From assembly GCA_020891255.1 (NCBI GenBank), contig BQFW01000013.1, positions 186,001-250,000 on the forward strand: a stretch of 64,000 bases of DNA, given 5' to 3'. This stretch comes from Entomortierella parvispora E1425 (Eukaryota; Fungi; Mortierellomycota). Numbering within the stretch: position 1 is the stretch's first letter; each line of letters begins with the position of its first letter. This document shows positions 35,401 through 59,205 of the stretch, one piece after another. A program made the position numbers and the translations under genes. The notes beneath the pieces were generated by a model that saw nothing but the letters and a program-made list of their open reading frames with translations, was not told the DNA's origin and did no database searches.

Positions 35401-37492
35401 CACAGATGACTCTTGGCCCTGAACCCACTGGGCTGAGCTCTGATCCTGCTGACTTTGTATCTGATTAAAAGATGTAGAGCCAATGCTGGACACTGGAGTG
35501 CTCACGTTGCCCCGCAGCAGGCTAGTGGACTGATCAGAGCCTGTAGTGGGCGACAAAGACGGTAGCGGCCATGAAGAGGAGTCGGTTGCTGGGTATTGTG
35601 CTGGGATTCCAACGGCTGAAACAGGAGCTGCGGATGAAATTGAGTGGTTTGCCTTTGCCTTTTGTCCAGACTGCAAATGTTGATGTGGATGATGCGGCAT
35701 AGACTGTAGAGACGAAGAGTACGATTGCTGGGGGTGTGACGAGTCAATTGCCTGTTGAGTTTGAGGGGCAATATCTGACTGCTGCTGCCGCTCCTGCCGT
35801 CGCTGCTGCTGCAGTTGTTGCTGTTGTTGCTGGTGGTGTTGCAGATGTTGCTGCTGCTGTTGATGTTGTTGTTGCAGTTGTTGCTGTTGGACATGCTGTT
35901 GTTGTTGATGTTGCTGCTGTTGTCGCTGTAATGGGGGCTGTTGCTGCTGACTGGGCAAAGGCGCGTTCAAGCTGACTACCCTCCTCTGGTCAAGATTTGC
36001 GAAACCAAGATCATTCTCACTATATCCCTGTGGAAGCAAATCGGTTGCGCGTTGACCAAACGACGAGAACCCTGGGTATCCTCCAGCCTGCTGTTGTCCT
36101 GATCTCTGGTTCGGCAGCTCAAACGGTGGCGATTGCAAAGGCATGGCTTGATTGATAGTCGGCTGATTGAGATAAGTCGCAGAACCAAACAACGTGTTAT
36201 TATCCTGCATGTCTGAGAGGGATGGCAGCTGGCCTCGAGCTGGCGACACAAATCGCGACGCATCTGCATCCTGATAGTCTCTGGGCCACAGGTTGGGCGT
36301 TGAGTTGGGCTCAAACTTGACATGCGCCGTTAGCTCGTCCACAGTTAGGTGGGCTGTATTGTCGTTCGTCAATATGTTGGCGCGATCGGCTCTGATCGAT
36401 CCTGGGTTGGCGATGCGGATCGATTTTGCAATCTGTTTAGCCTGACCACTTAAAGCCTCCTTCCTGTAATCCAGGTCCGCATCAGTGGGTTCGGATGCAT
36501 GTCCGGGGCTAAAGAACTGGGGTGTCCTGTATGCAGAAGCGGATTCGGTTTCTGGGCCTGATGACGATGGACCCTGGACCGAAGGATTGGTCAGCTTCCT
36601 TTGTGCGGAGAGCTTCTTTGCAGTCGGTGGTTTTGACTTTTTGGGCTCTGCAGATCCAGCTCCGGTTTCCGCGCCTATCCCTGATCCTGATCCAGAAGAA
36701 GCAGTGATTGCAGAAGATGACACGCCCAAGACCTTCTCCTTGCTCAGCGGTGAGTCGCCCCAGGTGGAACGCGACAACTGCGCATCCGTGTAGATACAGT
36801 CGGCCTTGTTCCTCTGGCAGTTGGAGCACGGCACCCCGCTGTCGCACTTTCGCTGTTCAACAGAACCCAAAATAGAATGTAGAAAAAAAATTGTCAGGGT
36901 CCCAATCTGGCTCAACCTGAAAAAAAACAGAATGTTTGCCTTCAACAATGAAAAATGCTTGCGCTTGGTATTGGATGCGTACCTTGTTTTGGCGACATCT
37001 ATTGCAGGAGGTGGCCACTTTGTGCCGCTTTCGGGTTTTGGTGGAGGCCTGGAGGATAGTCAGGTCCATTTTTGGCCTGCCGTTGATGCCAATCATTCTA
37101 TTGCTGTCACCAATCCCAGTGCTGTTGCCACTCGTCCCTACTGGACTGGACCGGATGGGCTGCAGTGGCTGAGGATACATCGAAAGGCGCGCCGCCGTCG
37201 AGAAGGGGGGGTATGCCATACCTAGGCTCTGATTGTTACTGTTGTTGTTGTTGTTGCCACCGCCCCCATCTATGCCGGATATGGGTGGGGGTCTTGGGGC
37301 GATGGGGGTTGTCATTGGATTGGAGAAAGAAGGATAGTCGCGCATGTTCATGATAGGTCGGGATAGGTCGTCGTTCTGAAAGTGGAGATTGTTGTGGGAA
37401 TAACCGTTGAGGGGCCGAGCGCCGTTTTGTGGTTGTTGTTGCTGTTGCTGACGCGGATGTTGACGGTACTGTTCGCTTGGCTGAGGAAGCAT
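32453..37492 (-). CDS. Zn(II)2Cys6 fungal transcription factor with Fungal_trans-like middle region and polyQ tract
   Basis: Exons 37492-36983, 36852-35125, 35039-34865, 34783-33506 and 33417-32453. Cluster CNRCRQNK|RKCDSGVPCSNCQRNKADC; LVDVYFE|NACFYYP.IN; RLWAFW..Y.RD...L.FGWP. Start codon is uncertain. Confidence 0.88.
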
Positions 37493-50829: not shown

Positions 50830-51895
50830 TCAGTTATGTCGGAATAGCTTCATGCCAAGCCAGTTGAAGAGAACTGCAAGTACCGTTACCGGGATGGTCA
50901 CCGGTACGAGCATGCAGTAGTGGCTATCCTGTTTGATCCAGTCCAGCGTCTAATGGTTGGGTTGTTAGGGGGTCAAAGGGGTCAGCATACATCCTTTTAC
51001 TTGAGTTGACGCTCACCATCAAGATGTTCTGTTCCAGTTGCCTTACCTTGTTTCCTGTCATTGGCATATAGTTGCTGGCCACCAGTGCATACATGCTAAT
51101 CGTAAAGCCGACCATGGTCGAAAAGAACAACAGGTAGCCCCAGAGATAGGTTGTGTCTGGTTCTTGATCTGAGATTAGAGTCGTAAACCTCCTGGTATGA
51201 TGCGGGGTATTAGGCGCCTTGGACCGATGTACATTTGGGGTTGACGCGGTAGAGGATGAAAACGATGTATTGTTGATGGTTGCTCCACCTGTTGCTCCAG
51301 AGTCCACCCCTCTTAATCCCCGAGAGTCGCCATTCAACTGTGGTAGCTTTGAGGAAGAGGATGTAGAGGAGACTCGTCGACGACGAAGCAATAATCCCTC
51401 TAGATCGCTTGGTGTACGGTGGTGTTGGTGATGTGACGAAGAATGCGCGTATGAGAGAGACTGAGGTCTTGAGGCGAGTGCTTGCTGCGACCTGCTATTG
51501 TGGTTAGTGTTGTGTAGCGTTGAAGAGAGGGAGAAGGGCGAGGAATTGAGGTCGTGTGAGGCATGTTGTTGATGCGTTGGCCACAGAGGTCCGTTGTTGC
51601 TATTTGGGCCGATATGGTTGGAGCTGAAGCCATTGCTATGGTGGTACTGCATCGAGACTGAAGAGGGAAGGCTGTGGAAGGTGTCTCGTCTGTGCTCAAG
51701 GTACCCTGCAGAGTAGGCAGCCCCGTTGGACACGGACCGAGAGGTCAGCGGAAGAGCAATGTTGAGAGGCGAGGGTTGATGCGGTGGCTGTTTGCGGTGG
51801 GGCGACTGTGCGGACGATGAGGATGCAGGTGGCCCGTCGAGTGGATGTGGACCTTCAGCATCGGATGCTGCAGGCTGGTCTGTAGTGGAAGGCAT
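50830..51895 (-). CDS. PIG-Y/Eri1-domain protein (GPI-GlcNAc transferase subunit) with long disordered N-terminus
   Basis: TM1 YLWGYLLFFSTMVGFTISMYALV, intron after GNK, then exon 2 TLDWIKQDSHYCMLVPVTIPVTVLAVLFNWLGMKLFRHN*, the characteristic PIG-Y C-terminus. Confidence 0.85.
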
Positions 51896-52474
51896 AGAGT
51901 AGTCAGGCAGACAGGCAGGCAGGCAAGCAGACAGGCAAGCAGACAGACAGACAGACAAGGATGGAGGCGACCGAAAGAGAGCGAATGCATGCATGCATCC
52001 TCTTTCGAAGGAGAGACAACAGGTTCGGACGAGCAAAGCCACCGAGCCGCCTCTTGGGAAAAGATCACCTTCGGAGTGTTTATTGTGCGGAGATCATCCC
52101 TTTGCTTTGGCTGACCCTGTCCTCGGCATCTGTTCCCTCTCTCTCTCTCTTTCGTCTCTTTTCACTCTCTTTTCCCTCTCTTGTCCCTTCACTGTCCTCC
52201 TACTGTCTCTCCTGCTACTGCCATTCACTCGGGATTGACCCTCTACTGTTGGATTCATCTGGCTCGGTAGGCATCTGTTCATCTCGGACGTGATCGATAC
52301 ATCCGGTGCCTGATTCATTCCGCTAACATTCTCTCTTGACCTTGCAGCGATCACAGCCATTTCCTCGATTCGGCTCGACTTGTACCCTGTTTCTGCAGCC
52401 TACTTTGGATCGATTGAACGGACAGAGCACATATACCAGCATAGGCGGAGGAGCAGGGAGAACGCGGTTCACAG

Positions 52475-55315
52475 ATGCATGCTGCCACCTCCAAGCGGAT
52501 AATCCAGGCCGGAGCTCGGTCATGGGATAGTCAACTGGCAGCATCCATGATCCGCCTGTTCACGGCTCGACACCGCCTCGGCAACCACCACCCTATGGCA
52601 TGCAGTGTGGCACCACATCAAATGCCTGCACAAAGGAGGGCGATCTACCATTCCGCTGCAGGGGCTATGCTGGATTACGATCCGTCAGCTGTCTCCCAAC
52701 GCAGCTCGTCCGGAAAACGGTCAGAGGAACCAACGCAGCCTCGCCTCACCATCGGAAGTTTTCTCGCACCACCAGGGACCGAGAAACACCCTAATCCATA
52801 CGAGACTATTGCAGACAGCTTCAAGGAAAAGGACGACTCTAACTTCCGGACACTTTGGGATCGAGACAGTCCCAACGCCCACGATCCAGTCTCTCCAGTG
52901 CAAATGATGAAGGAGGCCGTCGCCTCTGGAAGTGCTCGTCAAGTTTGGCATACCTACAGTCGATTGCGGAGGATGAGAAAGGGCGAAGACTGTTGGTTCA
53001 GGTCATCGAAGCTGTACTTCACGATGTTGCACTGTCTTCAACGCTCCAGAATACCGGAATCTTCCCAGTGGGCTACGGAGATCTATGGGGAGATGGCTCG
53101 ACACCATTCCCCCAAGATCCAGACTCTCAACACCGTTCTGGATATTTTGGTCCGCCACAGTGACAACCTCCAAGTGGCTGTCGATTTTTTCCACAGGGAG
53201 GCCGACCGTTTCAACATCTCACCGACAGTTCGAAGCTATAATATTATCATCCGCGGATTGGCCACAGGCGGTCAACTTGAAGAGGCCATCAAAATGTATG
53301 AGGACATGCGCTCAGGGGCCATTCAAGCTCGACCAGACATTACTACCTACTCAACCATCGTCGGCATCTATACCCGCAAGAATATGCATGATCAGGCGGA
53401 CGCAATTCTGAAAGACATGCTGAACGACAATGTCAAGCCCAACATGTGGATCTTCAATACAGCGATCAGTCGATTGGTGAAAAAGAAGGATTTCGCTGGC
53501 GCACGCAGGGTTATGAATCTCATGGAAAGCCAGGAGCGAAAGCCTGATGTCATTACCTACTCGACTCTCATCGACGGCTATGCAGAGGATGGAAACGAGG
53601 AAGAGATTGCCAAGATCCAAGCTGAGATGGCTCTAAACCATGTCTATCCTAATGCAAGGACGATCACCAGTACCATCAAGGTCTTTGCCAAATCCAACCT
53701 GGATTCCGAGATTGATGCACGTTTGGAGGCCATCATGAAGTCTCTGCCCACAGGAGAAATGAACGAGCTGACATTTGGCGTACTGATGAACGTTTATGGG
53801 AAACGCAAGGATCTCGAGGCTGCTATGGGCATTTATGATCATATCTCCTCCAAGGGACGTGTAGTTAACGATGTGATCGTCAACTCATTGCTGGACGGGC
53901 ACGTACGTGCGGACAAAATTACAATGGCCAACAAGATCTTTCACGACCACTTTACTGTCCGACAGGCCCGTCCCACGTCTTCACTGACATATAGTATCAT
54001 GATTACTGGGTGTTGCAAGCAAGGAAACCTCAGGGACGCGTTGCACTATTATCATCAGATGAACCTCTTCCAGATCGACCCCGATTCGGTCGTCTGCAGT
54101 CGCCTTATTCAGCTCTACCTGCAGCACCATCAACTTGAAAACGCCCAAAATATGCTTCGACTCATGCGGAACACGTCCCTGGATGTCTCTGTACACACCT
54201 TCACAATGATGATTGACTATCTGTCCAACGTCCAGGACAACCGTGGTGCGCTCCGGTGCTATCAGCAGATGGTCGATGACGGTGTCAAGCCTGATGTCCA
54301 TTGTTATACGGTCCTTATCAATGCGCACATGAGGGCTAAAAACTACATGGCCTGTGACCAGACGTACGAGCGGATGATCAAGGCTGGGATCCATCCAACC
54401 CTCGAAACCTTTACGTCCATGGTCCACGTTCACTCGAAACAAAACAACATCTACAAGCTCAAGGACTACTGGATGGCCATGATGGAGTCAGGACTGCTCC
54501 CAGATATCAAATCGTTCACGCTCTTGCTACAGAGCTATGGGCAGCAAGGCAACATTGAGATGGTCGAGTTTATCTACAAGGAGATCATCAGAAGCAAAAT
54601 TCCGATGGATGCCATTACTCTCACAACAGTAGCAAGCGCGTACGCCGCGTTGCCGAACCTGAATATCGCGAGACTGGATGATATTTGGGCCACCATGGAG
54701 GATTTGGACTTGCAGCCGACGCCCGAGTATTTTAAACGGCTCTTGGATGCCTATGGAGAACGTGCGCTGCCTGACAGAGTCATCAAGCTATGGCAGCAGT
54801 CGCAGACTCTGGCCAGGCCTCTGTGCTGGGTCCCGTCCCAAAGTAATCTGCTTCACCTGATCGAAGCGTGTAGGGAAAGAGGAAACATGGAGACGTTGCA
54901 TTCAGTGTGGCGTGCGGCCACCGTCGGGATGTATTGGCCACCGATCACTGTTGAACCGCGGGAACACTATGGAGATGATAACGCTCTGGATGAACACCAC
55001 CTTGGCTCTGATGGTACCGCTGGAAAGAGCAAAAAGATTAGAATGCTCCGACCTGAACCACCAGTGTTTACCGCCTACTTGAACGCACTGTTGACCCACA
55101 ATCGCTTCTCTGAGATTGAACAATTGCTCGAAGAGGGGTGTGACCAGATGAAGATTCGACCCAGAACCAAGGATTTCGAGCTGTTGTTTACCGGGCTGGC
55201 TCAATACGGCTTCTTGGCGACGGAACTGAACAAGATGCGAACGATTGTGTTGGCCAAATGGCCCCAAGTTGAGGCGCTGGTGGACACCATTATCCGGGAT
55301 ACACGCAAAATATAG
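52475..55315 (+). CDS. Pentatricopeptide-repeat protein, probably mitochondrial
   Basis: Tandem ~35-aa repeats, e.g. TVRSYNIIIRGLATGGQLEEAIKMYEDM, DITTYSTIVGIY, DVITYSTLIDGY, DVHCYTVLINAH; Arg-rich presequence-like N-terminus. The true start may be a downstream Met. Confidence 0.93.
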   Translation: MHAATSKRIIQAGARSWDSQLAASMIRLFTARHRLGNHHPMACSVAPHQMPAQRRAIYHSAAGAMLDYDPSAVSQRSSSGKRSEEPTQPRLTIGSFLAPPGTEKHPNPYETIADSFKEKDDSNFRTLWDRDSPNAHDPVSPVQMMKEAVASGSARQVWHTYSRLRRMRKGEDCWFRSSKLYFTMLHCLQRSRIPESSQWATEIYGEMARHHSPKIQTLNTVLDILVRHSDNLQVAVDFFHREADRFNISPTVRSYNIIIRGLATGGQLEEAIKMYEDMRSGAIQARPDITTYSTIVGIYTRKNMHDQADAILKDMLNDNVKPNMWIFNTAISRLVKKKDFAGARRVMNLMESQERKPDVITYSTLIDGYAEDGNEEEIAKIQAEMALNHVYPNARTITSTIKVFAKSNLDSEIDARLEAIMKSLPTGEMNELTFGVLMNVYGKRKDLEAAMGIYDHISSKGRVVNDVIVNSLLDGHVRADKITMANKIFHDHFTVRQARPTSSLTYSIMITGCCKQGNLRDALHYYHQMNLFQIDPDSVVCSRLIQLYLQHHQLENAQNMLRLMRNTSLDVSVHTFTMMIDYLSNVQDNRGALRCYQQMVDDGVKPDVHCYTVLINAHMRAKNYMACDQTYERMIKAGIHPTLETFTSMVHVHSKQNNIYKLKDYWMAMMESGLLPDIKSFTLLLQSYGQQGNIEMVEFIYKEIIRSKIPMDAITLTTVASAYAALPNLNIARLDDIWATMEDLDLQPTPEYFKRLLDAYGERALPDRVIKLWQQSQTLARPLCWVPSQSNLLHLIEACRERGNMETLHSVWRAATVGMYWPPITVEPREHYGDDNALDEHHLGSDGTAGKSKKIRMLRPEPPVFTAYLNALLTHNRFSEIEQLLEEGCDQMKIRPRTKDFELLFTGLAQYGFLATELNKMRTIVLAKWPQVEALVDTIIRDTRKI

Positions 55316-55802
55316 AATATAGACGCTCGCGCACGAAATATCACTCACGTACCGATCTCCATTGTACTTTTTTTCCAATTCTTGGTTACATATTGAAGGC
55401 ATGTTCCGAAAAAGCGACTGGCTTTGAAAGAATGTATGAAAGCCTGGGTCAGAGTCGCCCTGAGTTATTTGCAGATCTCTTTATTCCCTCAGTGGATTCC
55501 TTCCTAGGATGGCTTTTGTATTGTGGCAACGAGACTTTAAAATACCATCGGACAATCTGGAGCGTGGGATGGTCTCTTTTTGACATGGATTAACAATGGA
55601 GCCGCTGAAAAGAGGTCAAAGTTTGAGAAACGAAGATGAACGAACAAAAGCAAATACAAGGGCCGTAATGGCCCATTCGGCCTTTTTCTTTCTTTGACCC
55701 GCTCCGCCGGCAATCATGTTGTGCACCACAATGCACCTTTACTCCCCGGCGATCACAATAAAGGACCGTGATCTCGCGTAACTTGCGTAACACGTCCCAG
55801 TC

Positions 55803-55809
55803 TATAAAA
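55803..55809 (+). promoter_or_regulatory. TATA box of the Cys/His microprotein gene
   Basis: TATAAAA followed by a pyrimidine-rich leader, a putative 5'UTR intron (55923-56013, GTAACA..CTAAC..TAG) and ATG at 56032. Confidence 0.65.
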
Positions 55810-56031
55810 CCTACCGGGCCCGTCCTTAGCTCCCTTCTTTTTTCCTCCTCCTCCTCACCCCTCCATCTTCTCACGCGCCCACTCGCATATTCTTCAACCA
55901 ACCGCACCTTGTCCCAAAACACGTAACAGCTCCAACTCTAGTACGCATTGTTGAATCGATTGCGTCTATCTTGTCCTTCAGCTCTAACCCCCTCCAATCA
56001 CTTTCAATCCTAGGCACCTTTCCAAGACACC

Positions 56032-56250
56032 ATGACACTCTCCAACATCTCTGCCTCTCCTTCGGCTTCCTCAAACGGTTGCAGCCACGGCCATCACCAG
56101 CACCCTGATCTGGTCAACTTTGCTTCAGACATGGGAGGCAACCCGGGCGTCAACGTCCTCTGCGTCAAGTGCTTGATCGCCCATCCTGATTCCAAGATCT
56201 GCTCCAAGTGCTCCCTCTGCCTGGACCGCTGCTGCAGCTGCCCCAAGTAA
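56032..56250 (+). CDS. 72-aa Cys/His-rich microprotein (candidate metal- or Fe-S-binding)
   Basis: All 9 Cys are TGC and all Lys are AAG; acaccATG context; TATA box and 5'UTR intron upstream; lies in the gap between the PPR and carrier genes. Confidence 0.8.
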   Translation: MTLSNISASPSASSNGCSHGHHQHPDLVNFASDMGGNPGVNVLCVKCLIAHPDSKICSKCSLCLDRCCSCPK

Positions 56251-56769
56251 TTCAAGGGGAAAAAAAACGGCGAGCTGACATCAGGATCAAAATGTACATT
56301 TTTTTTTGTTCCGAGGCATCTCGCAGCGGAGATACCGCTTTGCCCCTCCCGTCAACTTGAATTACTTACTATCAATGAACCCCTCTAAATCCTGGATACC
56401 ACCCCTTCAACAATGAAGGGGAACTTTATGAGTCTCGACAAAAAAAAGGAAAGGCGCCACAGCCACCACACGTATCGCAGGATTTGTCCACAAATAAATG
56501 ATGAAAAGAAAAGAACCACCACGGATGAATTCCTCCGCATCTTTCATTCTTGCGACAAAGAAGGCCGACATGTTTGTTAGGGATCAGAAGGGTGGGTAAA
56601 AATACAAGGAGATATTTATCGCAGAAAAATGAATTACAAAAGACAAAGGAAAACAAAGAATCAATCTATCAAAATTGTCTATGTTGCTCGACACACAAAA
56701 AAAAGAAAATAACAGGGCGGCCAGCAATGGTAATGGAGGAGGTCAGTTGGCTGGTACATGAAAGAAAAT

Positions 56770-57644
56770 CTAATTTAAGCTCACAGCCATCTCCGTCTTT
56801 TCATACTCTCTCTCCCTTTCTTGGAATACTCGTTCCAAGCCTTCATAACCTCCAGCCGCCGTCAGCTCCATCAATTCCTGTTCCCTAGCCGCCTGCAGTT
56901 CCTGTCGGCGCTCCAACTCTCGTTCCGCCATCATCTGATCCAAATAGCAAGCCATTTCTCGGTCCTCACTCTCATACCGCCTGGCATCCAGCTTTCGCTT
57001 CATCACCTCAAATACCAGGAATCCAACACTGGCTGCTGGGACCGCACGGATCGCCGTGGCACCAAAGCTCGAAAACAAGAACCTTCTCCAGCCACCTCCC
57101 TGTTGCGCCTGATATTTGCATTCCTGCCAAGTCATTTGATACAGTTGGGACGAGATTGAAGTGCCAGAGCGCATGGAGGACGAATTGAGATGTTGACTGT
57201 GAGGCGAAGGCGCAAGTCGCTCGCGCTGTGCCTGGAGTTCAGCCTCTTTGGCGTAAAAGATGGCGCGAACCTGTTCCATTGGGTAGTCGATGGCTTGGTA
57301 GGCAACAGCAGCTGCAGCTCCAGCCAAGAGGACAAAGGTTGGCTCGAGTAAAAAGTATGGTCTTTCTTCCTTCTCTGACTGCGACAATGACGTTGAGGTA
57401 ACGAGAACGGGCGCTGGTGCTGTAGAAGCCGAGGGTGTGGTGGCGGATATAGATTTGCCATTGTCCGTGTTCTCTGACGAGGCGTTAGCGTCATAGAGAT
57501 TATAGTCGGCATTCATCTTTGCCTTCAATGCCTCCATATCTTCCCGGATTCCGTACAGCTCGTCGATAAAGTAATAGTATCCCTGCTGCTTCACCCACTC
57601 GAACACTCCAAAGAAGAGTCCACAGGCCAAAGAGTCCTAAACAC

Positions 57645-57680
<36 letters not shown>

Positions 57681-58696
57681 ACAAAACATTGGCAAAACAT
57701 TCCCACAGACCTTGCACTACAAACCATGACCTGGATCCACCCAAAGGACAACATACCTTGACAAGAGTCAGCGCAAATCCACGGTAGACAGTCTTCATTC
57801 CCAGCTCCTTCAGTGTGGTGATAGCAAAACTAGCCATGCTCTTGTGTTTGCCTCCATGAGCCAAGTCCTGAACCTGGAACTTGACTTTTAACGAGTCCAT
57901 TGGGGCTGCGACCAAGCTCTGTGCCGCTCCTGCCAACGCTCCTGCCATGAACACCGCTGTGAAAGGTGGAGGGGGAAACGTCCTTGACTTTTGATATGTG
58001 AATGCAGGATGAAAGATGGGTAATGTGAAGATATAGGTCGTGTACAGCACCGATCCGATGAAAGAGTTCATGATTAAAGGTGGCAGCACTTGTCGATACA
58101 CGAATCCAGCTCCTTGGGTCCTGATCGCATGAGCGACCATCCCGATCGAAGTTGCTCGAAAGAACTGCGAGCGTTTCGAAAGCTGCCTGTTGGCCTCGGT
58201 GGCGATCAAGCGGTTGGCGGGTGTGGGGATCATTCCCATGGTGGCCGCACGAGCCATGACCAGGTAGTCGACGCGCATGGGGCGAAACAACTGGAGACAG
58301 GCAAGCACATAAGATGAAGTCAGTGCGTGATCCATTGAAATAAAAAAAAGGGCAAGCAAGATCGGCATGACGAAAACAATGTGTCACCTTGATCGGTACC
58401 CTGTACCAGAACTGCAGGGCTTGGAGCAGCATTGAACGGGCAACGGCCGTGGGTACACCCACGGTGGCGGAGCCACGGACGGTATCCTTGTCGCCATGCT
58501 CAATAACAGAGGAGGCGACGATGGGGCTCTTTGCACCTTGTGTCTTGGACGGTGAACTGTGGCGACTGGATTGGGATGATGAAGTAGGGAGTGCAGCAGG
58601 GCTGGAAAGCACCGACTGTGGCTGTTGAGGGGAGACAAGGACATAGACGCCTGAGGGTATTGTGGTGGCGATGGCCTGTTGATGAGGGATGATCAT
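56770..58696 (-). CDS. Divergent mitochondrial carrier family protein
   Basis: Exons 58696-58388, 58290-57757 and 57636-56770. Motifs APMDSLKVKF, YRGF..TLVK|DSLACGLFFGVFE, YPMEQVR, IRAVPAASVGFLVFE; first repeat RVPIK|LFRPMRVDY. Confidence 0.88.
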
Positions 58697-59205
58697 GAAG
58701 AGCAAATGTGTGTACTGGGGTAATTCATTAGGAGGGGCAAGGAAATAAAGGAATGCCAAAGAAAAAACAAAAAAAAAAGGTCCGAGGACAGAGAAAAGGG
58801 AGAGAGGGGAGAGAGATCGGGAGAGACAGCGAAAGCGGCGATGGGGATCAAAGACAGAAAGACAGACGCTGAATCCCGAGTGGGGATGGGTGGATGTGCG
58901 AAGTGAATGGACGAAAGCAAGGAGAATGCAACAACGCAACGCACGGAATCGGAAGGATGCAGTCGGACCAAAGGTCCATCCGTCCAGGAACAGCCACACT
59001 CTGCCCGAGAGAGAGTCGGAGGGGAGGGACCCCCAAAAAAGATAAAAGAAAGATGAGCCAAAAAAAAACGGAGTTTGCCACCAATCACCATTCCAGTCAA
59101 GAATGGAAATTTTTTTTTATTTTTTTTTCTTTCTCTTCTGTGTGCGCTGTCTGCTGTCTGCTTCTTTGCCACATGCTGCTACATTGCGTTCACTCGCTTC
59201 GCCCT

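Follow-up and report, generated by a model that had tools for sequence, protein, structure and literature searches.

Bacterial-type [4Fe-4S] ferredoxins are marked by the motif CxxCxxCxxxCP, whereas C4 zinc ribbons and treble clefs, such as the zinc fingers of RecR and eL37, carry two CxxC knuckles 8-9 residues apart. Two-zinc modules (FYVE, ZZ, AN1, C1, SBP) hold eight metal ligands in 30-60 residues. Fungal metallothioneins are small, Cys-dense, intracellular proteins built on CC, CxC and CxxC motifs. The CCxC string of Cox17 is its Cu(I)-binding motif, and Dre2/anamorsin contains Cx2Cx7Cx2C. The Mortierellaceae, abundant soil and rhizosphere fungi that include the industrially used M. alpina, have been studied for their metal tolerance and for bacterial endosymbiosis. 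A full-text literature search on Mortierella and metallothionein yielded, among the matches listed, no description of a protein like the one reported here.

The window that we analyzed is a stretch of 64,000 nucleotides of contig BQFW01000013.1 (about 186,001-250,000; assembly GCA_020891255.1) from Entomortierella parvispora E1425, a soil fungus of the Mortierellaceae. It contains a single-exon coding sequence at 56032..56250 on the + strand (stop codon included) that runs from ATG to TAA and encodes a 72-aa microprotein. The protein has nine Cys (residues 17, 44, 47, 57, 60, 63, 67, 68 and 70) and five His, four of them in an N-terminal head (19, 21, 22 and 24) and one, H51, in a C-terminal Cys module; the ORF and these positions agreed exactly with the initial annotation. 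The exact 72-aa protein was recorded from this contig only, where it is already called as a gene in an annotation made by AUGUSTUS with RNA-seq-derived hints (PMC8759367). Since 33 ORFs of at least 30 aa lie within 2.5 kb of the locus, an ORF of 72 codons is not by itself beyond chance. No tandem repeat was found at the microprotein region, so the ORF is not a repeat artefact. A different part of the window (35802-35929) carries an imperfect tandem repeat, 9/21 nt and rich in TGC/TGT, whose translation in one + frame is a long poly-Cys. A Gln-rich coding repeat on the opposite strand is the likelier explanation, which is a caution for anyone looking for Cys-rich ORFs in the E. parvispora genome.

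A TATAAA box, taken as a putative promoter element, is indeed present at 55803..55808 (+ strand), 229 nt upstream of the ATG, and TATAAA was found 229-326 nt upstream of the ATG in five of nine orthologous loci. No ATG occurs between the box and 56032, so that 56032 would be the first AUG of a spliced and an unspliced transcript alike. A rule-based scan picked out a putative 73-nt intron in the 5' leader (55941..56013, + strand), which begins with GTACGC at 55941, contains CTAAC at 55984-55988 and ends with AG at 56012-56013, with a branch A 26 nt upstream of that AG. At the same place, the nearest relative carries a candidate leader intron of 66 nt (L003:3938-4003), 44% identical to that of E. 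parvispora compared with 76% for the next 17 nt; the same simple rule gave no candidate in the other genera. The codon bias that had been noted was also found, with a GC content of 0.75 at third codon positions (GC3) versus 0.47 at first and 0.51 at second positions, and TGC used for all nine Cys; GC3 of the neighbouring 946-aa PPR gene is 0.62. In the 3' flank, two blocks are identical in the metagenomic relative although the whole flank is only 57% identical: a 15-nt block at 56302..56316 (+ strand), consisting of a T-run followed by GTTCCGAGG, and a second block at 56391..56399 (+ strand), CCTGGATAC. The two blocks may be 3'UTR regulatory or processing signals.

Direct searches for related proteins were uninformative. 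A word-index protein search with the 72-aa sequence returned only the query itself, and an exhaustive phmmer search of 1.84 billion representative proteins returned the query and three long repeat proteins, which were rejected as homologues because the matches were repeat artefacts; no other E. parvispora protein came up in it. Neither the microprotein nor any of eight family members matched a Pfam family at E up to 10, a sequence search of the PDB gave nothing significant, no paralogue was found within the 64-kb window by tblastn and regular expressions, and an ESM Atlas feature search gave scores of at most 0.81, which is chance level. Since direct protein searches had failed, we turned to synteny. 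The PPR gene upstream of the microprotein has orthologues throughout the Mortierellaceae; their contigs were retrieved, and six-frame translations were scanned by regular expression and HMM. Gene order was compared over window positions 51,000-58,700 and the loci L005, L008-L012 and L016. The order of a PIG-Y domain gene, the PPR gene, the microprotein slot and a mitochondrial carrier gene was kept across most of the Mortierellaceae genera examined, and the gap after the PPR gene held, at each of the loci listed next, one same-strand ORF with the same C-terminal Cys pattern.

Synteny together with the Cys pattern identified orthologues in Gryganskiella cystojenkinii (L005:11633-11851, also 72 aa), Gamsiella multidivaricata (L008:9627-9998), Mortierella sp. 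GBA30 (L009:10269-10478), Linnemannia elongata (L010:10691-10918), M. alpina (L011:9459-9701) and Lobosporangium transversale (L012:10402-10719). Three further orthologues came from soil metagenomes (L002, L003 and L004; JGI 3300029943 and 3300030054, ENA ERZ27249417) and belong to a close relative of E. parvispora. The source organism is apparently unsequenced, and its PPR protein is 81% identical to that of E. parvispora. A metagenome scan with the family profile returned one contig that was already known and one false match, rejected because it lay out of frame in a bacterial glycosyltransferase. At the syntenic site in Lunasporangiospora selenospora (L016) no orthologue was found, the slot being occupied by a different, 332-aa gene, and in Actinomortierella ambigua (L015) synteny is broken after the PPR gene. 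The contigs of E. lignicola and E. beljakovae stop just after the PPR gene and stand outside the presence/absence count. Within the genomes searched, the family thus appears limited to the Mortierellaceae, a range drawn from a few genomes and from a profile search on a word index, the exhaustive search having used a single sequence.

The expectation that such a gene would be missed by annotation was correct for the other fungal assemblies, five of six of which have no gene called at the locus (G. cystojenkinii, Mortierella sp. GBA30, L. elongata, M. alpina GCA_015679415.1 and L. transversale), but not for E. parvispora itself, where the gene is called. A profile search recovered annotated members from Gamsiella (KAG0368654.1/XP_051414898.1) and M. 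alpina (CAO3567623.1), along with one JGI and one ENA metagenome protein (P0050, P0051, P0052, P0053). The Gamsiella and M. alpina proteins, the only two fungal genome entries recovered for the family, are labelled "hypothetical" or "unnamed" proteins. In the metagenomic locus L003, a prokaryotic gene caller had placed an out-of-frame 72-aa ORF (L003:4154-4372) over the 3' end of the true gene.

Comparison with the closest relative showed the ORF to be a genuine coding gene kept by purifying selection. The coding sequence is 81% identical between the two, compared with 43% for the promoter, 53% for the first leader exon and values of 44% and 57% for the putative intron and the 3' flank. By the Nei-Gojobori method, 26 synonymous and 15 non-synonymous differences give a dN/dS of 0.094 (binomial p = 1.7e-8 against neutrality). 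Constraint extends over both halves of the protein, with a dN/dS of 0.13 (p = 8e-4) in the N-terminal half (residues 1-42) and of 0.04 (p = 2e-6) in the C-terminal half that contains the Cys module; selection on the N-terminal half favours the upstream ATG over Met34 as the start. Between genera, where synonymous sites are saturated, pN/pS of the module is 0.06-0.40, and orthologues belonging to at least six genera retain the start, stop, frame and eight C-terminal Cys. The failure of the direct protein search to find a homologue would be expected if the ORF were a chance one or part of a conserved non-coding transcript. Because the substitutions are frame-specific and the reading frame is kept across these genera, this reading is essentially refuted, and we regard it as barely credible; the initial claim of a genuine gene was borne out.

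The N-terminal part of the protein (residues 1-42; 56032..56157, + strand) is a variable head rich in Ser, Asn, Gly and His that contains C17 and the string HGHHQH. Its length across the family ranges from 15 to 84 residues, and beyond the nearest relative it could not be aligned between genera; it evolves fast, frequently bears His and in some members also Cys. In the AlphaFold2 (AF2) predictions, pLDDT was below 50 over residues 1-39, which suggests that the head is disordered. C17 and the His cluster had been proposed to form an N-terminal site, but the closest relative has Arg in place of C17, and the cluster, whose position is not conserved, is missing in two orthologues. His is moderately enriched in the heads as a whole (25 of 425 residues, 5.9%), and a long tract rich in His occurs in one metagenome member. 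The head has a mean Kyte-Doolittle (KD) hydropathy of -0.69 and no Lys or Arg among its first 30 residues; hydropathy averaged over 11 residues is highest (mean KD 2.19) for the segment beginning at residue 40, beside the Cys module. Since the head has neither signal-peptide-like hydrophobicity nor early Lys/Arg, the cytosol is the default location. The cytosol is reducing, and clustered Cys there usually bind metal.

Another idea is that the Cys serve thiol or disulfide chemistry instead of metal binding. The product would then be a mini-protein that senses redox state or is held by disulfides, such as a Mia40-relay substrate of the mitochondrial intermembrane space, or else a peptide with heavy S-acylation. 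That the invariant Cys are even in number is consistent with this idea, as are the position of the gene between two genes for mitochondrial proteins, the PPR protein and the carrier, in genera with an orthologue, and the fact that CCxC strings are common S-acylation sites. However, in eukaryotes the neighbours of a gene predict little about it, the protein lacks twin Cx3C or Cx9C helix-loop-helix motifs, the head is not signal-peptide-like, and the absence of Lys and Arg from its first 30 residues makes a classical mitochondrial presequence unlikely. We therefore consider thiol or disulfide chemistry quite improbable.

The conserved part of the protein is an eight-Cys module at residues 43-70 (56158..56241, + strand), delineated from alignments of orthologues over the full length (A4) and over the module (A6, 12 module copies), with the pattern L-CxxC-x9-CxxCxxC-x3-CCxC in E. 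parvispora. Every one of the 12 copies has C44, C47, C57, C60, C63, C67, C68 and C70, so that the check on Cys conservation that had been suggested came out positive for these eight but not for C17. Across the family the module spans about 27 residues and follows the pattern CxxC-x8/9-CxxCxxC-x2/3/13-CCxC, with a short, often basic tail. Several other positions were also conserved. First, L43 is invariant in the full-length alignments, Val being found only in the second Linnemannia module, and P52 is nearly invariant across module copies. Second, a Gly-Leu precedes the first Cys in most genera, which also have in common a Tyr-Lys-Pro-Glu-Glu-Leu linker and a Cys-Ala-Tyr-Cys (CAYC) element. Third, aromatic residues (Y, W, F) inside the module are conserved in orthologues, that of CAYC being kept in most. 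The conservation of L43, P52 and the CAYC aromatic fits a folded mini-domain. H51, which had been counted as part of the C-terminal cluster, is not conserved among orthologues. Lastly, the L. elongata orthologue consists of two tandem eight-Cys modules (17 Cys in 75 aa) with almost no N-terminal head, indicating that the module is a duplicable unit.

The initial annotation had singled out a ferredoxin-like CxxCxxCxxxC, and this motif does occur literally at C57-C67. An Fe-S or rubredoxin-type Fe protein ([4Fe-4S] ferredoxin-like or [2Fe-2S]), acting as an electron carrier or an iron or redox sensor, would account for it; in principle the eight invariant Cys could ligate a cluster, and the Cx2Cx8Cx2C of the family is reminiscent of the Dre2/anamorsin motif. 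However, nine of the 12 copies have x2 behind the fifth Cys and one (Gryganskiella) has x13; x3 occurs in two, those of E. parvispora and its nearest relative only, and the residue after the fourth Cys is Cys, never Pro. No Fer4-type Pfam family matched, the sole ferredoxin-type match in the PDB (PscB) had an E of 2.4, and the predicted hairpin-plus-turn differs from the (beta-alpha-beta)2 fold of ferredoxins. Because the spacing, its one piece of evidence, is not conserved, the Fe-S reading is weak, and we consider it very improbable, slightly more so than thiol or disulfide chemistry.

Structure prediction pointed to small zinc-binding folds below significance. The full-length AF2 model (pLDDT 50) was set aside as unusable. 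Among five AF2 models of the module, one reached a pLDDT of 91.8 and the other four 47-56; the best (m6142d80a42ee, window 56146-56247) has a beta-hairpin bearing the first CxxC (model residues 3-6 and 11-14), followed by a short helix. All profile matches in the PDB were non-significant, the best being the C4 zinc finger of RecR (E = 0.035) and the zinc ribbon of eL37 (0.37), followed by the Cys-rich domain of zDHHC palmitoyltransferases (0.6-0.8) and PscB. The zDHHC resemblance was rejected as chance-level, as its E values were obtained with a full-length profile and the match was lost with a module-only profile. With the module model, Foldseek returned nothing below E 1 and VIA-align nothing above Z 2.9, and ESM Atlas shape matches reached TM 0.5-0.7 over about 30 residues, values that carry little meaning at such length. 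The top rows of all three fold searches were small zinc-binding domains, all sub-threshold, including RanBP2/NZF, ribosomal ribbons, FCS, FYVE, ZZ, AN1, C1, SBP, endonuclease VII and the FAM76 N-terminus; no ferredoxin was among the rows listed. The Cys-rich N-terminal part of vertebrate FAM76 (PF16046) was among the nearest Atlas shapes (TM 0.63 over 30 residues), and FAM76B is known for its His-rich tract.

Because eight invariant Cys are clustered in a protein predicted to be cytosolic, they most likely ligate metal, which makes the initial proposal of metal binding plausible, and the metal is probably zinc. The reading that we put first, with about an even chance of being right, is a structured two-zinc mini-domain joined to a disordered, often His-bearing head, in a cytosolic, Mortierellaceae-restricted protein. 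It is favoured because the spacing is rigid, because non-Cys residues including aromatics are conserved and because the first four Cys resemble zinc knuckles. The eight thiolates would fold the module around metal, the likeliest load being two Zn(II). A site like that of a zinc ribbon or treble clef would be made by the first two CxxC knuckles, while a second or bridged site would be completed by the tail, CxxC-CCxC. Such a module could act as a compact structural or partner-binding zinc finger, to which the His-bearing head would possibly add weak metal capture. Several points count against two zincs. No likeness to a zinc finger reaches significance (profile E values start at 0.035), four of the five module models are poor, and the orthologous promoters had no known metal-responsive element in common. 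Adjacent CC and CxC are more typical of metal-thiolate clusters, as in metallothioneins and Cox17, than of simple Cys4 zinc fingers, and a metallothionein with inducible expression would be just as compatible with the TATA box and the marked codon bias.

The main rival is accordingly a new family of metallothionein-like buffers or detoxifiers, metal-induced, in which the module would hold a polynuclear Cu(I), Zn(II) or Cd(II) thiolate cluster and the His-rich head would add capacity. The protein is small, Cys accounts for 30% of its module and falls in CC, CxC and CxxC motifs, the CCxC that never varies in the family is the string by which Cox17 binds Cu(I), and the duplication in Linnemannia recalls modular metallothioneins. 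The His content of the heads, with the long tract of one member, would suit such a role, and expression may be strong or inducible, judging by the TATA box and the high GC3. On the other hand, Cys make up only 12.5% of the whole protein, and strict spacing with conserved non-Cys residues, Y, W and F among them, is atypical of metallothioneins. No Ace1/Cup2-, Mac1- or Zap1-type element was common to the orthologous promoters, and a scan of these promoters for common k-mers and for ZRE, CuRE, Ace1, GATA, CCAAT, MRE, Yap and Aft sites gave nothing consistent. No metallothionein family of Pfam matched eight members at E up to 10, in agreement with the initial view that the protein differs from typical fungal Cu-metallothioneins. 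We judge a metallothionein-like function possible but rather unlikely. There is a smaller chance, though a better one than for Fe-S or thiol chemistry, that the module is an undescribed metal-cluster domain (a bridged Zn2/Zn3, polynuclear Cu(I) thiolate or non-canonical Fe-S center) with a His-rich antenna, in a lineage-specific metal or redox sensor or chaperone.

Judged by sequence, the microprotein represents a new family within a familiar kind, that of small Cys-rich metal-binding or zinc-finger proteins. The family has been largely missed by current resources, with neither a Pfam model nor a significant structural relative, and it was found by synteny-guided reading of raw DNA where direct phmmer of 1.84 billion proteins gave spurious matches only. 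As a conserved, probably highly expressed Cys/His microprotein, it would be a reasonable candidate in metal handling by Mortierellaceae, and its practical significance is modest at present.

Among the described systems closest to the module is the C4 zinc ribbon or treble clef. The two knuckles of C44xxC47-x8/9-C57xxC60, with the spacing of RecR and eL37, are invariant in the 12 copies and coincide with a predicted hairpin at the first knuckle, as in a zinc ribbon, and a hydrophobic residue likewise precedes the first Cys. The likeness to RecR and eL37 is non-significant, however, and covers the first four Cys only; the CxxC-CCxC tail has no counterpart in these fingers, and no Pfam zinc-ribbon family matched the microprotein family. 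With the two-zinc modules it shares eight potential ligands in a short segment and a place among the top structural rows, whereas their ligand spacing is different and much looser, sequence similarity is lacking, and the structural scores stay at Z of at most 2.9 and Foldseek E above 1. The zDHHC Cys-rich domain shows a matching CxxC-x3-(K/R)P...C-xxC-xxC spacing, Lys-Pro pair included, yet the family has no DHHC motif or membrane spans and is too short for the flanking helices.

The comparison with fungal metallothioneins (Cup1/Crs5-type, Neurospora Cu-MT and arbuscular-mycorrhizal GintMT1-type), drawn from general knowledge, is likewise two-sided. The microprotein resembles them in size, Cys density, likely intracellular location and CC/CxC/CxxC motifs, and in the duplication of its module in one lineage, Linnemannia. 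Unlike them, it has its Cys nearly confined to the last 27 residues, behind a long, disordered, non-Cys head, and it conserves aromatic and other non-Cys positions. With bacterial-type ferredoxins it shares the C57-x2-C60-x2-C63-x3-C67 spacing in E. parvispora, but not the Pro, a second motif, a Fer4 match or the ferredoxin fold. Cox17 has in common with it the invariant CCxC and differs in its twin Cx9C coiled-coil-helix fold, the microprotein having no Cx9C pair and no sequence similarity to it.
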